Below the pieces are notes generated by a model. That model ran no database searches. It had not been told where the DNA came from and saw only the letters and a list, made by a program, of their open reading frames with translations. The position numbers and the translations under genes were made by a program. A stretch of DNA of 64,000 nt. Source: Tubulanus polymorphus. Its lineage: Eukaryota; Animalia; Nemertea. Shown one piece after another: positions 7,227-42,680 of the stretch. The stretch covers positions 2,356,072 through 2,420,071 of the forward strand of contig NC_134034.1 of the NCBI RefSeq assembly GCF_964204645.1. The letters run 5' to 3'. How positions within the stretch are numbered: position 1 is the first letter of the stretch; every line of letters begins with the position of its first letter.

Positions 7227-9603
7227 AGATGCTGGTGATAAGGTCCCGATTTTGTTGAAAAAAAAAAACGACCCCGTCTAACTGCAGTTTGGGTCACCTA
7301 TCCACTGGGTGGCGCTAGTGTTATTAAAGAATAGTGTTAGGCCTATGGTAAGGTTAGGTACATAACCATTAGGGACACCTAAACTGCAGTCATACCAACA
7401 ACCCGAAAGTAAACATCATACCATGGCTGCAGCCCTGTCAGATAGGTAAGGAAGGAGGCTAAATGGGATAGGCCAGAAGGCAGGGAAGGGATACGGGGTG
7501 GGGGGGGCCCTCAATTTACTAACTACTACATCAAGAAAAAATCTAGAAATGAAATGTTTTATACAATTTCACAGGGTCAAGATTCAGGATGTTCTAAGCT
7601 CAAAGCGGTTATTATTGAATAGACTCGTTGAAACTGGGCTATGAAGTTTTAACCAACAGCAACAAACACTGAAACTAAACGGGGCGCGAACAGACTACTC
7701 TTCAAAGCGAGTATCATCATTTGATAACATTTTTTTTTTCACAAAAGCGGCCTAAAATCGAGTGAAAACTATCCCCGAATAACGAAGAAGAAATTCTTTA
7801 AACGATTCGTTAGGTAGTTTTATTATCTACCTTGTTTTAGTTGATCGTGGAAGAATGTTTTTCTTTTGTTTGAACCGGCGAAAATCTTCACGTTATCCTA
7901 ACGTACTCTAGCGTCCGCTCGGTATTCACGGGGGCCGGGTCACACTTTCATTCAAACGCCATTTTCGTTATTCAATAGATTTGGAAATAATTTCGATATC
8001 TAACAACGAATATAAAAGCGAAAAGATTTTTATTGTAAAACTCCCAACAGATCTATCTTTCTTGATTGATCGGCAGAAGATCGGCTTATTGGTTGAAAAT
8101 AAAGTGATTTACAAAATAGTGGCCCGGCTGAAGTAATCTATGAACGCGGTACAAAAGCGACTCCACTGTTCAGGGTCGTAGAAAATACTCGCTACCCGCG
8201 ACAAAATCGATCAGCGATGGGGGCAGCACCGTCTTGTCTGAACTTAAGCGCGCGTTCAACGCACCTAACGGTTCACTTGATGAGATTCCAGTAAATGTGA
8301 CCACGACCGATTTATAAATTAAAAAGTTTAACGGGTAAATCGTTGAAAATTTCTCCATTTATTCAGGTCAAATAAGTCGATTAATTCGTCGGAATCGGAA
8401 CACGGCTTCAATCGAATATAATATTCATAATATTCAATAAAGTTACAAAGTTCAAAACAAGATAACGTAATAAACATGTATACAAAACACAAGAAAATAC
8501 CACATACATAACAACGTTATTCATATAGAATAACAAGTTATTTCAAATGACAATGCAGGATGCCAATCTCAAAAGTATATCAGTAACATCATAATATCAT
8601 CGAAATATGAAAGGAAACGTTCAAATTAATCGGCAAGGCCATCGGTAACATCATCGCCAATCATCCCATCGTCAATTGCTTTCGTCACTCGATTGGCGGG
8701 GATAAGCGAATGACGATTGACGATTCCGTATTTAGAATTTTGAAATGCTGCGTATTTGAAAAATAAAATACGCAGCTCTTCGTAGCGTTATGAGTATTTA
8801 GTCTGAATACCAGTCGTTGTTTACAAGTTCCCTACAACAGGTTCGTTTGGGGAACGACGGCATAGACTATTGGTATTAACACTGTGAATAATTTTTTGTA
8901 TTCAAACGGAAAAGCCCTCGTCTCCCCTTAGAAAATATAAAAATACGAGTGTATTTTACCACTTTTTTATTTCAAAAAGGCTCATAACCAAAACTTCGCC
9001 GGCCGGCCGATCGTCGTGTATGGAAAAAGGTTTGGACGAGAAACAAATTATCAACTTTGAAGGGCCTAATTTGCTCAGTCGAATCACGACGATGGCTAAA
9101 TTCGGAGGGAGCTGTTGGGAATCAAGTAGTTCATTTTATGGCCTTATTATTAAAGTTCTACGATATTCAGCTGGCTACTGGCGCGTATTCAACCCGGCAG
9201 TAAAACCTTCTAAAGGCTCTCAATGTAAATCCATTCAACGATACAGAGACACAATTGCGGTTTTTCAGAGTTGTTGATATCATTCGCACGCGCTATTGAT
9301 CACAATAATTGGAACACGTCACCGGCTGACCACGGTATGTACAAGCATACAGGCGACCATTCACCTCCGCAATCTCACACTGTGCAGACATGCTTCCGTG
9401 GATTCTCCTGGCGATCATGATCCTGGCGATCTTCGCTGCGCTCCTGTTCCTGCTTCCTGAGGAATGACGTCTTTATGTTTTATGTGTTACTGTTCGTCTC
9501 CGTACTGTCCTGTACTGTTCTGTGTTTATTAATCCGTTCTGTTTTTCAGGGTCTAATCTTTTTTAAATTTCAGGGCCGATTTCTCTGTCGATTTTCAACG
9601 TTC

Positions 9604-33287: not shown

Positions 33288-35115
33288 TTCTACGAGCAGT
33301 CAGTCGGTGTTAAATCCCGATCAGAAAACAGACTCAAACCCCGTCTGTTAATAACGTGCGCGCAACTGACGATCTCGAGTCTGAGGTAGATTAAATTCAC
33401 CTCCTCAAAACTCGCAGTTTCATCGTTAAACGCGCCGATAAACGGCACCTCATCGTTCGTGTCGATGAGTCGCATGCTATCATCGTGATGCGAAACCAAT
33501 TGTTCTCATATATCTTTCTCTCGTCAGAACCAGTATTCTACCGCGGGGTGAATTGAAGCGAAATAATACGTTCCGAGCTCTCGGCCTCGACATGAAGCGC
33601 GCTTGAGTTACCTACACAGGCTAATAGTGACAACAAACCGATAATTTCTTCCGTATTTTAAATCAAACAATGGCTGAATTTTTCGATTTGGCTCGAAAGC
33701 AGTTCAGTTTGTTTTTTTAGCGTTGAAAAAATACATTCCTTCTCACTGTAGCCAATGTTTGTCCGATCAGTGAACAACGAACGCAATGTGGTACCCGCAG
33801 CGCTACTGTGCCATTCGAGGATTCCACGTATGGCAGGCGAGGATCCGACAGGTGTCGCCAGTAGATAGTTGGTCCGCGTTCAATTTCCTTCTTCATTTCA
33901 ATTAAATCTGAATGAACTTTTCTCTAAAATGACTCGATTATTTATGCAAACTATACCCAAATCCGATAGGAAGAATGAAAGTATTTCATATTTGGTGAGT
34001 CCTGTGATAGTATACGGACTCAGGAGTCTAAAAATCCAGTTCAAAGTAAATTGAAAATGAATTAGTGTCCACAACGAACAACCTACTGCTCGTCACGCCA
34101 TCTGGCGGGATAGCTGGTTATGCAGGTTCCCCATTACGTATTTATCACTTCTCGAGAAGGTGCGAGCGCTAAAACGAGGATTCGACAATCTACTGCGGCA
34201 ACCGAGGATTTCACTTGTCCAGTCACCAGATCATTTCGTGTGTATAGTAAGTTTCATTCGGATCCACCAGGTGTCACTTGTGTACATCTGTAAATTTGTA
34301 AAAAAAAATCGGCCCCGACCAAGTTATATGGATCTATTCATCTCTGGAATGCAGAATCGTGATCTAAGTAGTCCCTTATATCAGTAAGACAGGAGCCGCT
34401 TCCGTAGCCAGGGCTTGGACCAGTATAAGACTATATTAAGACTGCGGAACCGGCCTCTGGTGTTTTTTGATCTTAAAATAGGGATTGACCCTGTGATTTA
34501 TTTGATTGGTAAATTTCGTTTGATTTTTTGATTTGGTGTCCCTTACAAACCCACCACACCTGCCGGGAACGAAACAGGGGGTTTGATTTTGAAATCGGAA
34601 ATCGAAGTACAAATATAGTTGTGTGATCGGCGGTAGAGTTTACAGAATTTTTTGTTTAAATCGAAGTACATAATTTGAAATTTTCGGTTCCGGTTCATTC
34701 AAACAATCATCCAAGCAGTCTGAACCGGCAAGCGACTGATTGGGGTTAATTTAGTTGGCTGCCTAATTTAATACATCAAGATTTAGGAAATAACTATATT
34801 ACCTGGTGTTAGATGGTTAGATCGGCTCAGTCTAATATAGGTCTTAGGTCTAGAGAGCCATCGCTGTACGACCTGCCCCCAGGTTTATGTTGAAACTGAT
34901 CGGTCGAAACCACCTTACGTCGTTCCAATAAGCGGGAAACTTAGATGAAAATGCCAAATAACCTAACCTGTAAGTTATCGGCTACATTGAGCGAAGAAAC
35001 CCTTGAATTAGTAGCTTTTTACAGATTCCCTTTTGCGAGTATTTGATTTCACGGTAATTTAGATGAGCCTAAACATATCGCGACAAAATGGTGACTTTCA
35101 TTACTTTGTTTATAG

Positions 35116-35203
35116 AGGGGATAGCGCGTACGCAGTCCCCCACTACCAGAAATTGTACACCCGAGTCACCCACATTTGGGGAGATCGTATGGGTCAACCA
35201 GTC
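35116..35203 (-). ncRNA. RNU1: U1 snRNA, 3' half (interrupted gene)
   Basis: Minus strand GACTGGTTGACCCATACGATCTCCCCAAATGTGGGTGACTCGGGTGTACAATTTCTGGTAGTGGGGGACTGCGTACGCGCTATCCCCT gives stem-loop III, Sm site AATTTCTGG and stem-loop IV. Confidence 0.95.
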
Positions 35204-37733
35204 TTTTTTTTTTTTTTTTTTTCTTTTTTTTTTTTGCCTCAGATACTACCATATATATTGAAAGCCTAAAAATTTTAAATGATGTGCTGTAGTAATTAGA
35301 GAGAGATTCGACTATGTCTATAGAAAAGTGTTCAAATAGGTATGTTAAAGTTAAGTTGGCGGCTGATGTTTATTGAGAGCTAAGAGCTAAAAGCAGTGAA
35401 AATGAAGCGAGTTTGATATGGCAGTCGGTCTCGTATCCTAAATATCGGATACGATAGTCCTTCATCATTGGCTTTTTGTTTTTGCTTAGGGTTAGGTGTA
35501 TTTGGATTTTGGTAGGTTAGTTTCCTGTTGTTTGACTATGTGCTGCAAGAAAGGGGGACATTGTAATAGTTAAACAGTTAAATAAGCATTTAAATATTTG
35601 AAAAGTTGGAAAAGTCTTCTGCTTTTCGTCTCGAGGAAAAAGGAACCTGAAAAGGAATTAAGAAATTTCTTTGAATTAATGGCGCGCTGCGCTGCGCTGG
35701 CGCTGCAAATTTGCTTTGCTTATTCGCTGGTACCAATAGTAATAATTTGGTGTAGTCAAAGGATTTTCTGTATAAGTTATAGTACGTACAGGTGGGATAG
35801 TACTAAATACGTGGGATGTAATCTTTTATTATTTATCTAATTTTTACGTAATTACATATACGTATAAGAAACACTGTTTCTTTGCCAGTTAGTGTAGGAT
35901 AGAGTTTCGTTGGGTATGTTAGCAGGTAGGGAAATTTTGGGTTTGTGTCGGAAACGACTATAACACAAGTTTCCTGCGGGGTGTATACATTAAGAATATG
36001 TCAAGACGGGTAACAGCATTTAATAAAATAGTGAACGCTGTTCGGGGGTTATCAGGGTGACGGTTCTGAGTATACATATGTATAATTAGGATATTATATA
36101 GTTTTGATCTACAGTATGTTGCTATAGCATTACACACTGTAGATCTGCATAAGGTTTAATGCCAGTTTTAGACAGTTTATGCTGGATTACAGCGTGGTAT
36201 GATATCTATTATAGAGTGTACGTAGCTATTTTCACAGCAGTACGTACATAAGCTTATGTAAAAGGAATACATAAATATGCTTATATATACAGGTTCTATA
36301 TAGAGTTGGTGTCAGGAGTTCATCTACCAGTCATTTCACTTTGGGTATTTATAATAGTATCGTTTGAGGGTGGATTTGGAAGTTAGATCAAGGGGTATTA
36401 GAGGTTTTCTATGATCTGTAATGTGTAGCTATATAATATATTTACATATGCATTACACATAAGACAGGTCTGTTTTTGCTGCTGATCTTTTTGGGCGGTC
36501 GTTCGTATCAAGAGACGCCTGTGCATAATATTTTCCTTGGTACGAGATAAAAGGTGTACCAATAATGTATATGCCTTGAATTCCTTTGGGCTTTGACAAA
36601 CGCAGATCGTTCATGCAGAGGAGACGGTTGTCAGATATACGTATTCGTCGAAAATTGGTAGCGTAATAATGAACGTTACATTTGGGGTAATTTTCAATTG
36701 TGGGGTATCAGAGTGAATATTCTGATTTTGCAGAAGTATAGTCGGGAAACTAGTTTTGATCTATAGTGTATAGCTTTGTGCATTACACAGTACAGATCTG
36801 CAGATTTGCCGTTTTCTGAAGTGTACGTAGCTATAAATACAGCAGTACGCACAGATGCATATGTATAAAAATACATACCTATATATGTATAGTTGGTCTT
36901 ACAGCCGCTTCGCTTGGGGTTTTACCAAGATAACGTATTATGGTGGTTTATACGGTGTGTAGCTATAATATATGTTGAAGCAGTACACGCCTGTATTAAC
37001 CCACAATTTTATGCAGCGGTGATAGTCTTTCAGATATTCTATATCTCAGCATGTGTAGTGCAGATACAGAGATTATTGAAAAGTAAAAGGGAGGTTCCGT
37101 TCATGTCAATACATATTTGACTTCCAGGTTTAAACTCCTCTTTTCAAAGCGTATTTGGAGAGGATGGTTCTATAGTATAGTGATCACACATATGAAGAGT
37201 TTGGTATTATATGGTTGTGTAGCTATTATTGTACAGCAGTACACACTCTAAACAACCCTGTACTTTTATGTACAGTCACGTAGAAACTCCTGGAGGAAAA
37301 GGAAAGAAAAAGTTGCCGTTGGTTTCAATCTTTCTATTAGCAAGCAGAGAGAGGATCATATGGGTTATAATCTTTACATATTTGAAAGTAGATTCGTTAC
37401 AAATTAGGATCACGCGTGTGTCGAGCCAGGTTCATATTGGGATATTGTATATATGTTTATAGACGTATTACACGCATGTAAAGAGAATATGATTTGTGGT
37501 GGCGGATTTCCAGAGTTTTAATGTACGGGCATTCAAGCGTAGTATAAATGGTTATAAAGGGTTTGCCCCGATATTATTTTTGAATATGTATGAAATTTTA
37601 GTGATGTATACGTACATATCTACATATACCGACATATACATACGTATCCATATATACACACATATACATATAGACGTTGTGTTTTTGAAAAATAATACCA
37701 AAACAATACTGCGTACATAGACTCAACAGTTGT

Positions 37734-40700
37734 TTACGATATATTAGTATTTCTGATTTTATTTTCTCTTCTAAACTTTGCTATTTGATTTTTAAATTCT
37801 AGTATAGGGGGTATAGGTATAACGTTTTTATGCTTAGTTTGGTTTCTGTGTTTCCAAATGATGAATTTATAGGTTGTGATAAATATATTGGCGTTGTTCT
37901 CAGCCTGTTTGTCTTTGTACTTAAATTTAGGATGAAAGAAAAATATCAGTTCCCTATCGAGGGTATTGTTCAATAAGGTATCTGAACTCGTATTTTTCAG
38001 ATATTCAAGCAGAGAAGTTTTTATGGGTTGTATATGTTGACACAGTATAAAGGTGTGATCTAAGGTTTCTTTTTGATTACAGTGTGGGCAGAAGGCAATG
38101 TATTTACCCTTTGACATGGGTAGTACATCATGTACAATCCTGTAGTTCAGTTCCTGGAAGTTGTCAGGCATTGTTTTTGACCAGATGATTTTCCAAATCT
38201 TTTCGTTGATTAGATGAGGGTTTCTTCTTTGGATGTTAATTTTAATTTTTTCAAATTTAATAAGGTGTAGGTATAGAGTTTTCAAAGTGTCTGTCGGTTG
38301 GGTCAGGTCATATCCATTGTCTTTGATCTCTTGTTGTAGTAGATTGAGTATCTGATAGTCTGGTCGAGTGGTTAGTTTTAATGGAATGTGTCTTATATCA
38401 ATATTAGGGATAATTTTCTTGATCTTTAATGATCCAAAGGCATAAATAGTGAAGTCAGCCCATTGTGGATATATGTGTTGCATGGTTAGCTGTTTTAGTC
38501 TAATAATTTTTTGGAAGAGGTGTGCTTTGGCTTTTTGTTTTATATTCGTAACTCCACATCCTCCTTTATCTAATGGTAGGTACATTGTTTCTCGAGATAT
38601 TGTCGGCATTTTATTGTTCCAAATGAAGTTAAATAATTCTCCTTGGAGTTTTTGTTCATACATTTGGGGGAGTGGGATAAATTTTGTTATGTACCATAGT
38701 GTGCTGAGAATATAAGTGTTAGCTAAAGTCGCTCTCTGTCTAAAGTTGATGTTTCTAATTGTCATTATTTTAAAAGTATTAGTAATTTTTTCCAAGAGAG
38801 GTGTCCATAATTCTGAATTTGTCACTTTCCCAATTTTTAGTCCTAAAATCTTAATAAAGTCTTTAATATATTCTGTCGGGTATATATATTGTGGTTTAGG
38901 GTTTATCGAAAGTATTTCTGTTTTTACGGTATTTATTTTGGAGCCGGAGGCTTTACTGTATTCGTTAAAAGTTTCAAAGGTCGCATGCATCTCATTTGGA
39001 GATCTAATAAAAACATTCGTGTCGTCAGCATATTGGGTTAGTTTAGTTAAATTTTTACCGCCAGGATGCATTATACCAGAGATATTGGGGTTTTTCCTTA
39101 TCATATTGCCTAGAGGTTCGATACATAAAACATATAATAACATCGATAAGGGACACCCTTGTCTTACTCCCCTTTGAATTTCTACAATATCGGTTAGTTC
39201 ATTGTTGATAATGATTTTAGATTTGGGTTTTTCGTAAAGGATGTGTATCCATTTCTGGAAGTTTGGTCCGAAATTATATTTACTAATTACTTTAAAGAGG
39301 AAGTTATGGTTTACTCGGTCAAAGGCTTTTTCCTGATCTAAAGACATTATAGCTGCATGTGTATTAGTGTTTCGGATATATTGAAAGATATCTTGGGCCA
39401 GATATATATTATCAAAGATTTGTCGTCCAGGAATGCCACATGTTTGGTCAGGATGGACAATTTCTCCTAAAACTGTTTTCAATCTTGCAGCTAAAACTTT
39501 TGTTAGTATTTTATAATCCACATTTAACAACGAAATTGGACGCCAATTTTTTAAAAGTTCCAAATCACCTTTTTTTGGAATAATTTTTATATAAGCTAGT
39601 TGTTGCGATTCTGTGAGGGATTGAGCGAGGAAGATGTTATTATACAGTTCAGTTAATTCTTCTCCTATGTTTTTCCAAAAAGTCAAATAAAATTCTTTAG
39701 GTAGTCCGTCTGGTCCAGGCGTTTTATTGTTTTTCATGTCAGTTAGTGCTTTAAAAATTTCATCGGTAGTTATAAAATCTTCTAAACGGTCCGCATTTTC
39801 TTGTGTTAGTGTTTTATCTATATAATTAGTAATTTCCTCTTGTTTGGCATCGTTCAGGTTTTCTTTGGTATATAGGTCTTGATAGTATTCTTGTGCGATC
39901 TTTTTAATTTCTTCAGTGTTTTGGGTCGGGTCATTGTTTTTATTTTTCAAGGTTTCAATGATAGTGTTTTTATTTTTGGAGTCCAAAAGTCTCTTAATAT
40001 AAATGGGACTGCTTTCGTCTTCAAAGTAATTGTCAGATTTGCTTTTAATTTCATTTCCTTTATTTTTATGGGAGAGTATAGTATTGAGTTCTTTTTTAAT
40101 ATTGTTTATTTCGGTTGCTAATGTTTCGCTAGGAGTGTCATTATATTGCTGGGATTTCAAAGTTAGTTCTTCGTCAAGACTGTTTTCTGCTAATTTATAT
40201 TTTTGGGCTTGTTCTATAGTGACTTTATTAATGGATCTTTTAAATTTTTCTTTTAAATTGTCCCAGGCGTCGCGTGCAGTCATGTGTTTTTTAGTGTAGT
40301 TTCTGTAATGATTAATATCGGCTTTAATTGATTGTTTAAGTTTCTTATTTTCTAATATGCTAACGTTGCATTTCCAGAGTGCAAAGTTTTTGTTTTTAGG
40401 TCGTAAATTACTAGTAGAGATTGGATCCAGAAATGGTATTTCGATTTGAACTGCCTGGTGGTCGGTAAAAGCTATTGGAAAATGTCTTATAGTTGTTTCT
40501 AAAATGCGTGAGTCGTTGGTATAAAATCTGTCTAATCGGCTAGAGGCGAGTCTATAGACAGATTTTCCTCTAGGCATTCGTGTGTAAATAGTTTTATTGG
40601 GATATTGGTGTCTGAATATATCTATGAGTTTATTATTTTCCAAAAATTGACTAAAGAATTCTCGTATACGTGTATAGCTGGGATCTAACTTATTTTTCGA

Positions 40701-41168
40701 GCTATCTAGGGGGTTGAGTATAATATTAAAGTCTCCAGCGAAAATAGTGGGGGTATTATCAACGCTAATTTTTTGTTCGAGGACTTTATAGAATTCTGAT
40801 TTTTGAAGATTTATAGCCGGGTTGTATATATTAATAATTCTTAATTTTGAGTTGCTAGTTTTATTTGTTAAATAGATGTGTGATAGTCGTCCTGGTATTA
40901 AAATCTGAAAGGTTATATAGTGTTCGGCTGCTATTATGTTGGGGATTAGAAAGATGGTTCCAGCCTGCTGTTTCGTGCCTGGGTTGTTAAAAATATGGTT
41001 GTTAGTCTTGTTTTCAAGGTATTTGATCGTTCTTTCAGGGGGGTTGTGGGTTTCTTGTAGTAGGATAATTGGTTTTCTAAATTTTTTAATTTGTGCGACA
41101 ATGTCTGGAATTTTGGTTGATAAGCCCTCAGTATTGAGGGTAACTACGTTTAGAGGATTTAGATCCAT
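37734..41168 (-). CDS. ORF2: APE endonuclease + reverse transcriptase + C-terminal zinc finger (1144 aa)
   Basis: Motifs TLNTEGL, LQETH, IYNP, AGDFN, SRLDRFY, TDH; PGPDG, WRPISLLNVDYKIL, LDQEKAFDRV, GVRQGCPLS, QYADD; CPHC...ETLDHTFILC. Confidence 0.97.
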   Translation of the reverse strand: MDLNPLNVVTLNTEGLSTKIPDIVAQIKKFRKPIILLQETHNPPERTIKYLENKTNNHIFNNPGTKQQAGTIFLIPNIIAAEHYITFQILIPGRLSHIYLTNKTSNSKLRIINIYNPAINLQKSEFYKVLEQKISVDNTPTIFAGDFNIILNPLDSSKNKLDPSYTRIREFFSQFLENNKLIDIFRHQYPNKTIYTRMPRGKSVYRLASSRLDRFYTNDSRILETTIRHFPIAFTDHQAVQIEIPFLDPISTSNLRPKNKNFALWKCNVSILENKKLKQSIKADINHYRNYTKKHMTARDAWDNLKEKFKRSINKVTIEQAQKYKLAENSLDEELTLKSQQYNDTPSETLATEINNIKKELNTILSHKNKGNEIKSKSDNYFEDESSPIYIKRLLDSKNKNTIIETLKNKNNDPTQNTEEIKKIAQEYYQDLYTKENLNDAKQEEITNYIDKTLTQENADRLEDFITTDEIFKALTDMKNNKTPGPDGLPKEFYLTFWKNIGEELTELYNNIFLAQSLTESQQLAYIKIIPKKGDLELLKNWRPISLLNVDYKILTKVLAARLKTVLGEIVHPDQTCGIPGRQIFDNIYLAQDIFQYIRNTNTHAAIMSLDQEKAFDRVNHNFLFKVISKYNFGPNFQKWIHILYEKPKSKIIINNELTDIVEIQRGVRQGCPLSMLLYVLCIEPLGNMIRKNPNISGIMHPGGKNLTKLTQYADDTNVFIRSPNEMHATFETFNEYSKASGSKINTVKTEILSINPKPQYIYPTEYIKDFIKILGLKIGKVTNSELWTPLLEKITNTFKIMTIRNINFRQRATLANTYILSTLWYITKFIPLPQMYEQKLQGELFNFIWNNKMPTISRETMYLPLDKGGCGVTNIKQKAKAHLFQKIIRLKQLTMQHIYPQWADFTIYAFGSLKIKKIIPNIDIRHIPLKLTTRPDYQILNLLQQEIKDNGYDLTQPTDTLKTLYLHLIKFEKIKINIQRRNPHLINEKIWKIIWSKTMPDNFQELNYRIVHDVLPMSKGKYIAFCPHCNQKETLDHTFILCQHIQPIKTSLLEYLKNTSSDTLLNNTLDRELIFFFHPKFKYKDKQAENNANIFITTYKFIIWKHRNQTKHKNVIPIPPILEFKNQIAKFRRENKIRNTNIS

Positions 41169-41179
41169 GAAGATTTAAT

Positions 41180-42178
41180 TTAGACTTCAACAAATTGTAT
41201 GTTCTTTGTGGAGGTTTTCTTTCTTTTATCTATTTTTTCTTCGGGTGTGCTTCTCGGTCTTTTTGGGGTCGATGTTAGAGCCTGGCTCGACACACGAGGT
41301 TCGGCTTTATCATCATACGATCGTGTCCTAGGGGGATATATCGGTAGGTCGATCATATCTTTGTATATTTGGATATTATGGTCTACATCCAAGGTATATT
41401 CGGTTTGTTGGGATAATGGAGGTGGGAGCTCAAATTCCTGATCGTTTAGCTCATCGGCTTCCTCGATACTAGGTTCGGGGAGCGGTATTTGAGCCGGTTC
41501 TTGGGAAGGCTCCTCTACAGCATGTGGTATAACTACCGCTTGGGCATACGTTAGATGCTGTTGGTGATCTTGTGTTGCGGCTGCATCTTTCGGGCAGTCC
41601 TTTGCTATGTGTCCCCTCTCGCGACATACATAGCAAAGAGGAGGTTGAACTATCTGGCCATCGTACTTGACCGTGATTCGGGCTTTTTTAACGTACATGG
41701 TACGATTTATAGGTTTGTCTATGTAGCCCTTGAAGTGACGGACTCCCGAAAAAATTTGCGGGTAGTCTTTGAGGACTCCTCTTTTATGCGAAAGGGTCAT
41801 AAACCCATATTTTTCGTTAAGTTTCTTGGCAATATCTTGGCTTGCCAGTTCAAAAGGTGCACCATATATGTGAAGCCACACAAAGGGTTTCGTGTCGGAT
41901 GTTACGTTGGGTGCACGTTGAAAATTTATTCGGGTGCCTTTAATTGAGGGTATCTTATATTTTATTTCTCTTAGAAGTCCTCCAATCGTTCTGGAGTCAG
42001 TAAAACTGACCTCATAAATGTTGTCGGACGTTCTCGACACTTGGCATATTTCAGAGATTTCGATGTCGTACTGTTGGAGGAGTTTAATTATTTCTGTCTG
42101 ATTAATGTGCCTATTGTCATTATCGTCAGGCTCAGGCTCTAAAATCAGGGTAGCTGACCTGTCTAAGAGGGTAGTCAT
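41180..42178 (-). CDS. ORF1: nucleic-acid chaperone with a single CCHC zinc knuckle
   Basis: First ATG at 42178 (MTTLLDRS); CYVCRERGHIAKDC knuckle; acidic/Pro-rich then basic C-terminus; 11-nt spacer to ORF2. Confidence 0.9.
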   Translation of the reverse strand: MTTLLDRSATLILEPEPDDNDNRHINQTEIIKLLQQYDIEISEICQVSRTSDNIYEVSFTDSRTIGGLLREIKYKIPSIKGTRINFQRAPNVTSDTKPFVWLHIYGAPFELASQDIAKKLNEKYGFMTLSHKRGVLKDYPQIFSGVRHFKGYIDKPINRTMYVKKARITVKYDGQIVQPPLCYVCRERGHIAKDCPKDAAATQDHQQHLTYAQAVVIPHAVEEPSQEPAQIPLPEPSIEEADELNDQEFELPPPLSQQTEYTLDVDHNIQIYKDMIDLPIYPPRTRSYDDKAEPRVSSQALTSTPKRPRSTPEEKIDKRKKTSTKNIQFVEV

Positions 42179-42533
42179 AGTGCGTCTGATATATATATAT
42201 ATAAGTGCGAAGAGACAAAAGGTTATAATTTTAACAAACAATATAACAATTGACAGAGAAAATGTTAATGTAATAACTTTTAATTTTCAAAATGATATGA
42301 ACATGAAAAAGGTGCACTACAAAGTGAAAAGATTTCACCGATAATGAGTGTCTCCAGCTAGATTATGCTCCAGTCCGGTATCGAAGAGCTGATATATATC
42401 CGCTAAGTCTGCGAATTAGCACTGTTACAAGTATGGTATAATCCAGTAATCCAAAAGTGGTTTTGATGAAAAACTATGCACCTGGGAGTGGCGCGGAAGG
42501 CGCTACGTAAAAGCGACTAACACAACGCTAAGC

Positions 42534-42590
42534 TCCTTTACCGCCCTTGCCTCGGCCAGACATGATTAATCGATGATTATTGAGTAGTAT
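42534..42590 (-). other. Histone H4 mRNA 5' fragment (27-nt leader + codons 1-10) at the 5' end of the retrotransposon
   Basis: Minus strand ATACTACTCAATAATCATCGATTAATC ATG TCT GGC CGA GGC AAG GGC GGT AAA GGA = MSGRGKGGKG, the H4 N-terminus. Gly10 favours H4 over H2A. It lies inside the TSDs. Confidence 0.85.
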
Positions 42591-42680
42591 TGGGTCAACC
42601 AGTCTTTGTGCAATGACAGGCCTCGCCATAGGGGCACCGCCTTCCAGATCACGGTGAGCACCCCTGTGCCAGGTAAGTAT
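42591..42680 (-). ncRNA. RNU1: U1 snRNA, 5' half (nt 1-90)
   Basis: ATACTTACCTGGCACAGGGGTGCTCACCGTGATCTGGAAGGCGGTGCCCCTATGGCGAGGCCTGTCATTGCACAAAGACTGGTTGACCCA. Joined to 35116-35189 it gives 164 nt, the canonical U1 length. Confidence 0.95.

Follow-up and report, generated by a model that had tools for sequence, protein, structure and literature searches.

An Apparently Histone H4-Specific LINE Lineage in Tubulanus polymorphus, With an H4-Headed Copy in a U1 snRNA Gene

Main Finding

A 64,000-nt window of the Tubulanus polymorphus genome (C10:2356072-2420071 of the 268-Mb assembly G000; positions given without a contig are window coordinates) contains a U1 snRNA gene split by a 7.4-kb LINE of the APE plus RT type (42590..35205), which is flanked on both sides by a 15-bp TSD and begins with the start of a histone H4 message. 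The explanation that we favor, and hold to be very likely in the absence of any RNA evidence, is that this element belongs to an H4-specific lineage of the L1/Tx1 type that would be transcribed from the H4 promoter, and that the copy in the window is an off-target insertion. The cognate target of the lineage would be one site in the H4 coding sequence, so placed that an inserted element would sit 105 nt downstream of the H4 start site. RNA polymerase II, starting from the TATA promoter of H4, would then produce a capped chimeric RNA in which the H4 leader and 10 codons precede the element, with the poly(A) end of the element itself last, and this RNA would be the template for retrotransposition. 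On landing in another H4 gene its head would be homologous to the target and the junction would be seamless; on landing off target, for instance in U1, the H4 head would be retained as a 5' transduction. The window copy would be an insertion of the latter kind, slightly truncated at its 5' end (51 nt short). Since it lacks the H4 TATA box, it probably has no promoter, short of being transcribed from that of U1.

Organization of the Interrupted U1 Gene

The U1 halves, the TSDs, the H4 head and the element all lie on the minus strand (Table 1). Identity of the 5' part of U1 to at least 10 other U1 loci (88-100%) runs up to 42591. Rfam at the gathering threshold reported nothing in the window, because the U1 gene is split, and no ribozyme was found in the window with Rfam. 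Weak Rfam matches to mir-297 and mir-1277 within the 3' UTR (37582-37677) were discarded as TA/TG low-complexity repeats and not microRNA genes, and no tandem repeats were detected in the 3' UTR, which is about 99% identical across three sibling copies of the window element. The 3' end reads TCTGAGGC followed by A12 G A19 (35243..35204), the final A possibly belonging to the TSD.

Table 1. Coordinates of the interrupted U1 gene, of the element in the window and of the young copies in the assembly.
Feature	Position	Strand	Basis or location
U1 snRNA 5' part (nt 1-90), ending in the 5' TSD copy	42591..42680	minus	Rfam, E 3e-10
TSD, AGACTGGTTGACCCA	42605..42591 and 35204..35190	minus	Sequence
Three extra bases, ATA, between TSD and H4 head	42588..42590	minus	Sequence
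H4 head: last 24 nt of H4 5' UTR plus codons 1-10, ATG at 42563..42561	42534..42587	minus	54/54 identity to H4
Element's own 5' UTR, beginning GCT TAG	42179..42533	minus	Sequence; homology to element 5' ends after H4 codon 10
ORF1, 332 aa from first ATG, one CCHC zinc knuckle	41180..42178	minus	Translation; Pfam zf-CCHC 3.5e-6
ORF2, 1144 aa: AP-endonuclease, reverse transcriptase, zf-RVT-like C-terminal region	37734..41168	minus	Pfam
3' UTR, 2.5 kb, ending in TCTGAGGC	35236..37733	minus	Sequence
Poly(A) tail, A12 G A18-19	35205..35235	minus	Sequence
U1 snRNA 3' part, opening with the 3' TSD copy	35115..35204	minus	Rfam, E 9.8e-10; sequence
Young copy (a), full length	Window, 42590..35205	minus	In U1 gene
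Young copy (b), full length	C12:11063557-11070959		In local non-coding repeat
Young copy (c), 5'-truncated, without first ~1450 nt	C10:8390250-8396091		Inside H4 gene of the 10.2-kb array
Young copy (d), 5'-truncated, without first ~3450 nt	C10:2099319-2103159		In a different U1 gene

An earlier note, made from the window alone, had described this insertion correctly overall; its strand and some small counts needed correction. It had given the insertion a 57-nt H4 start. The leader and codons 1-10 proved exact, and the H4-derived part was found to measure 54 nt, comprising 24 nt of leader and the codons ATG TCT GGC CGA GGC AAG GGC GGT AAA GGA, preceded by the three extra bases ATA. These bases (42590..42588) resemble neither U1 nor the H4 leader, which has ACT there, and represent either untemplated addition or a microhomology junction. 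A search of the whole assembly showed that the head is identical over 54 of 54 nt to seven host H4 genes at C10:8.357-8.427 Mb, an identity that, by alignment, is far beyond chance and that bears out the earlier assignment of the leader to the host H4 5' UTR. The seven genes are spaced about 10.2 kb apart, and a protein search found no other H4 coding region in the assembly. One interval between H4 genes (G000:C10:8377508-8390192) measures 12.7 kb, against about 10.2 kb elsewhere, and therefore points to a further insertion of about 2.4 kb in that histone repeat. Intact H4 genes show the order TATAAA, 27 nt, ATTCG, a 75-nt leader and the ATG. Since only the proximal 24 of these 75 leader nucleotides are present in the window, this copy is slightly truncated at its 5' end.

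The first element bases, from 42533, supply an in-frame stop that closes the H4 reading frame after 11 codons. The H4 AUG accordingly opens an 11-codon upstream ORF (MSGRGKGGKGA, 42528-42563), which is ended by the first six bases of the element. An in-frame TAG lies within 4-10 codons of the junction in two other subfamilies as well, and such an early stop may have been selected to halt translation of the H4 tail peptide.

Copies in the Assembly and the H4 Target Site

The census, a search of the whole assembly, identified four young copies, defined by a mutual identity of 98.6-99.3% (Table 1). Apart from a single 3' fragment next to a U1 gene and some matches of 60-70 nt to a short repeat, older relatives (66-92% identity) are confined to C10:8.52-8.66 Mb, beside the H4 array, and all share the strand of H4. 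The 5' UTR of the window copy is homologous to the 5' ends of the elements in the histone cluster, downstream of H4 codon 10.

Copy (c) showed what such a target looks like after insertion. The promoter and leader of its H4 unit are identical to those of other array units over 254 of 254 nt. At its 5' junction GGTAAAGGA is followed directly by the element (GGC GGT AAA GGA, then element, right after codon 10). At the 3' junction TCTGAGGC is followed by an A-rich tail, GGGCGGTAAAGGA and CTG GGA AAA GGC, with H4 residues 4-103 intact. An element copy placed in H4 immediately after codon 10, with promoter and 5' coding sequence on one side and poly(A), TSD and remaining coding sequence on the other, had been anticipated, and copy (c) has this structure. 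The 20-mer TSD predicted with it was not observed; the TSD at the H4 site is (AA)GGGCGGTAAAGGA, 13-15 bp. These junctions define a bottom-strand nick at GAGGC(AA)^GGGCGG and a top-strand break after the GGA of codon 10, with the element inserted in sense orientation.

Other members of the cluster use the same position. In an old, decayed unit at C10:8524028, an H4 promoter (96% identical), the leader and 10 codons lead straight into the 5' end of a homologous element, which by its layout is the configuration postulated for a donor. At another junction in the cluster, AGAGGC and an A-run precede a decayed TSD copy (GGGCGAAAGA), after which the next element begins with its 5' end; this order marks a head-to-tail tandem at the same H4 site. 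Two copies of another subfamily (L004 and L013) are likewise positioned after H4 codon 10. The same H4 nucleotide was used by a truncated young copy, by a full-length old one and at a tandem junction, in the same orientation and with a TSD, which qualifies the insertions as site-specific.

The H4 niche is very small, with seven assembled genes, one of which is occupied by copy (c). Among the copies resident in H4, this sole young one is 5'-truncated, whereas the full-length one is old and decayed; a young full-length copy in an H4 gene or behind an intact H4 promoter was not found in this assembly.

Origin of the H4 Head

Copy (b), on contig C12, extends the head seen in the window. It is identical to H4 over 105 of 105 nt and opens with the A of ATTCG, which lies within an initiator-like TCATTC, 33 nt beyond the T that begins TATAAA. 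From the distance to the TATA box and from the ends of the copies, without any start-site measurement, ATTCG was predicted to be the H4 transcription start site. L004, of a different subfamily, starts within about 10 nt of this point, the exact base being ambiguous owing to an internal deletion. Copy (b) ends in poly(A), and the local non-coding repeat that contains it includes a paralogue with a clean empty site. This repeat exists in at least nine copies (87-98% identity) spread over 2 Mb (C12:9.53-11.50 Mb), the empty site being at C12:11498639, with a duplication of 0-1 bp; no RNA gene and no ORF of note were found at the C12 insertion site. Poly(A) together with either a TSD or a clean empty-site paralogue indicates that the H4 head and the element were mobilized together as one RNA. 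That RNA is supported as having begun at or very near the H4 +1, a predicted position for which we have no RNA data, and the window copy would be a product of the same RNA, its copying having stopped 51 nt before the 5' end. Transcription from the H4 start, as the earlier note had inferred, thus gains support from H4-headed copies, one of them reaching back to the predicted +1, and has no RNA evidence; the public sequencing runs with element sequence were three DNA-like runs from a single study, and no RNA run was among them.

The alternative offered from the start was a one-off template switch, in which the reverse transcriptase would have left the element RNA for an H4 mRNA and so produced a chimera like those of U6 and L1. 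L1-type enzymes are known to switch to abundant small RNAs or mRNAs as templates (discussed in PMC4494074), and the window copy by itself could not exclude such an event. The wider set of copies decides the matter: the H4-element joint falls at the same nucleotide, after the GGA of codon 10, in at least three subfamilies and at least four copies or subfamilies, including the second full-length copy and diverged subfamilies; it coincides exactly with the 5' junction of TSD-flanked insertions in real H4 genes; and the family is concentrated in the histone cluster. A joint that is common to several copies and subfamilies and equal to the genomic H4 insertion site excludes a one-off switch, to which we leave practically no chance at all.

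A second alternative retains the shared joint and dispenses with residence in H4. On this view the initiator and downstream core-promoter elements within the 105-nt H4 leader would make that leader a heritable internal promoter, and full-length copies at any location could be transcribed from the first base of their own head. Internal promoters are a feature of jockey- and I-type LINEs. Both young full-length copies lie outside H4 and none lies inside H4 in the assembly, and the C12 head starts exactly at the predicted +1, as a self-firing internal promoter would preserve it. Against this, the H4 TATA box at -33 was not carried along, H4-resident full-length copies show no duplicated head, and the window copy lacks the first 51 nt, initiator included. 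That the family has long been concentrated in H4 units, in the orientation of H4, accords with dependence on the host promoter, and expression data are lacking in both directions. We consider a portable promoter of this kind quite improbable, and retain transcription from resident H4 promoters as the preferred origin of the head.

Homology Between the Element 3' End and the H4 Target

The 3' end of the element matches the GAGGCAA of H4 codons 4-6, immediately 5' of the TSD, in agreement with the earlier note. GAGGCAA followed by poly(A) ends all young copies as well as the 86-89% identical fragment beside U1, and a relative with 85% identity ends in AGAGGC and an A-run. On these comparisons the homology is real and conserved. 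The role suggested for it in the note, that it may help priming on H4, found no support in that form: GAGGCAA lies to the left of the bottom-strand nick, on the non-priming side, which led us to reject simple annealing of primer and template. The strand that would prime after nicking is the complement of GGGCGG and what follows it, possibly ending in TT able to pair with the tail. The homology might arise because the RNA 3' end is tethered at the 5'-phosphate side of the nick or because a single protein domain reads the same word in RNA and DNA, or it might be a relic of H4 sequence.

Insertions in and Beside U1 Genes

Copy (d) splits a second U1 locus and has a TSD of only (A)GACTGG. The U1 sequences flanking copy (d) and the window copy are far more diverged than the two elements are from each other, and copy (d) is therefore an independent U1 insertion. 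Both copies used the same bottom-strand nick in U1, within the 1-3-nt ambiguity of an A-run, and a different top-strand break. No copy with a U1 head was found in the assembly search, and the use of snRNA promoters that the note had suggested thus has no support.

A related 3' fragment (86-89% identity; L030, G000:C10:1051391-1052076, minus strand) was located 25 nt downstream of an intact U1 gene and in the same orientation. It ends in TCTGAGGC plus A8, has a possible TSD, AAAAATGGAA, and is interrupted by about 290 bp of unrelated sequence.

These insertions count against strict H4 specificity, since, of the four insertions that lie elsewhere than in the histone cluster, three interrupt or adjoin a U1 gene. 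We considered whether U1 mimics the H4 site and found no statistical support for the idea, a local alignment of the two being no better than shuffled sequences (273 of 2000 shuffles reached the observed score). What the two targets have in common is limited to short words (CGAGGC; AAAG(G)ACTGG), whose register relative to the nicks differs.

Targeting might, beyond sequence recognition by the endonuclease, act at the level of the locus, through tethering to transcription, processing or nuclear-body factors common to histone and snRNA genes, H4 codon 10 being merely the preferred nick. The three U1-associated insertions, which lie within U1 genes or 25 nt downstream of one and are all co-oriented with U1, agree with this proposal, as do the use of one U1 nick in two independent events and a similarity between targets that stays at the level of shuffled controls. 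Precise, repeated nicks in H4 and in U1 favor recognition of sequence or structure, and the short words common to both targets do exist; the sample, moreover, is tiny, and there are no protein-interaction data. We regard locus-level targeting as unlikely, without dismissing it. A wider form of the idea, which we hold just as tentatively, is that targets are found via the machinery of non-polyadenylated Pol II genes (replication-dependent histone and U snRNA genes; histone locus or Cajal bodies), and/or that the 105-nt H4 leader acts as a portable core promoter. If this were true, shared machinery would explain how an H4 specialist repeatedly landed in or beside U1 without significant similarity between the targets. 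Specificity for one H4 site, with U1 insertions as off-target events, remains our preferred reading.

Two further U1 genes, at L050 (G000:C10:1832300-1833560) and L051 (G000:C10:1354200-1355500), are split in stem-loop I, with the TSD CCACCGTGATCTG. The insertions are 5'-truncated, poly(A)-bearing LINE copies at a U1 site different from that in the window. Their membership in the window family was rejected, no tblastn similarity to the window ORF2 being found in the parts compared, and they look like a dedicated U1-specific element.

Classification and Comparison With Known Elements

Pfam analysis of ORF2 returned RVT_1 (2e-40) and Exo_endo_phos (1.2e-9), with zf-RVT below the cut-off. The best solved relative was human LINE-1 ORF2p (1.8e-74, residues 6-881, covering endonuclease and RT), and the same comparison gave no match to the R1 or TRAS endonuclease. 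ORF1 has its single CCHC knuckle, and no RRM was detected by Pfam. An N-terminal AP-like endonuclease followed by RT is the criterion for the L1/Tx1 group of APE-type non-LTR retrotransposons; the predicted protein meets it, and on this domain order we assign the element to that group.

The best public homologues of ORF2 are 28-35% identical, none exceeding about 35%. Of eight contigs that encode the nearest ORF2 relatives, one starts with U5 loop sequence; in a second a U2 fragment closely precedes ORF1, and in a third U2 sequence borders the element at either end. None of the eight has flanking H4 fragments. The U5 loop and U2 pieces lie at L062:1-60, L056:4350-4437, and L058:43-180 and 8247-8293, in relatives of about 30% identity. 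These U5-headed and U2-flanked elements are snRNA-gene-specific LINEs similar to Keno. The contigs come from marine or metagenomic eukaryote DNA, one of them being filed under the bacterial MAG GCA_040505915.1. In a quick ML tree, the window ORF2, together with P0021, was sister to the clade holding the U2-resident and U5-headed elements, and stood apart from plant L1 and from Xenopus proteins annotated as L1. The pairing with P0021 is a long-branch join and named references were absent from the tree, so that placement in the Tx1 clade is consistent with the tree and not proven.

Tx1-clade LINEs are known to target U2, U5, 5S (Mutsu), satellites, microsatellites and transposons (PMC4494074, PMC4640811). 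With Keno and other target-specific Tx1 LINEs (Kojima and Fujiwara, 2004, as cited in PMC4494074 and PMC4640811) the H4 element shares an AP-endonuclease and RT in ORF2, a CCHC knuckle in ORF1, and insertion in sense orientation at one fixed site of a small multicopy gene, with copies bearing a target-derived 5' end. It differs from them in targeting a protein-coding gene, at the codons of the histone H4 N-terminal tail, and its ORF2 is only about 30% identical to its Keno-like relatives. Our literature searches, including the target lists of PMC4494074 and PMC4640811, gave no LINE that targets histone or other protein-coding genes. PMC10145014 was examined as a possible histone-LINE precedent and set aside, as it mentions TX1 and H4 in unrelated contexts.

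The element is also comparable to R2, which is specific for 28S rDNA. The transcribed target gene makes a promoter of the element's own unnecessary in R2, as is inferred for the H4 element; in both, inserted units are inactivated, and tandem or dead copies pile up in the array. R2 has one ORF and a restriction-like endonuclease, is co-transcribed by Pol I and carries a self-cleaving ribozyme. The H4 element, in contrast, has an AP endonuclease, two ORFs, an inferred Pol II histone promoter and its own poly(A) end; by inference it keeps the capped H4 leader from +1, and no ribozyme was detected. The findings that bear on R2-like co-transcription are DNA copies that carry the H4 leader, one from the predicted +1, without RNA data. 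For R2, upstream target sequence on the RNA can aid formation of the 5' junction (Eickbush; Fujimoto, 2004, as cited in PMC4494074).

As in the 5' transductions of L1 and SVA, host sequence upstream of the donor would be carried along by transcription that starts at a host promoter; here the segment is always the leader of the target gene itself, a consequence of site specificity and not of chance donor location. Chimeric U6-L1 retrocopies also fuse the 5' part of a cellular RNA to the 3' part of a LINE within one TSD, but their junctions are variable and one-off, whereas that of the H4 element is fixed and equal to the genomic H4 insertion site.

Significance

The histone array of T. polymorphus resembles rDNA occupied by R1 and R2: a young copy has knocked out one of its seven H4 genes, and the 140 kb next to it are strewn with decayed inserted units. 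The repeated insertions in U1 raise the question of how targets are chosen, and an enzyme with specificity for the H4 site could be of interest for targeted integration. The element is a natural case of promoter parasitism, its transcription being inferred, in which the capped leader of the target becomes the 5' end of the element. H4 is among the most conserved genes, so that the target site could be stable over long periods. Site-specific LINEs were already known for rRNA, snRNA and 5S genes, microsatellites, satellites and other transposons (PMC4494074, PMC4640811). Site specificity and co-transcription are thus familiar in LINEs, and what is new is a protein-coding histone gene as a class of target. 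A lineage specialized on the H4 coding sequence would extend the safe-haven strategy to a protein-coding, Pol II-transcribed and S-phase-regulated multigene family.
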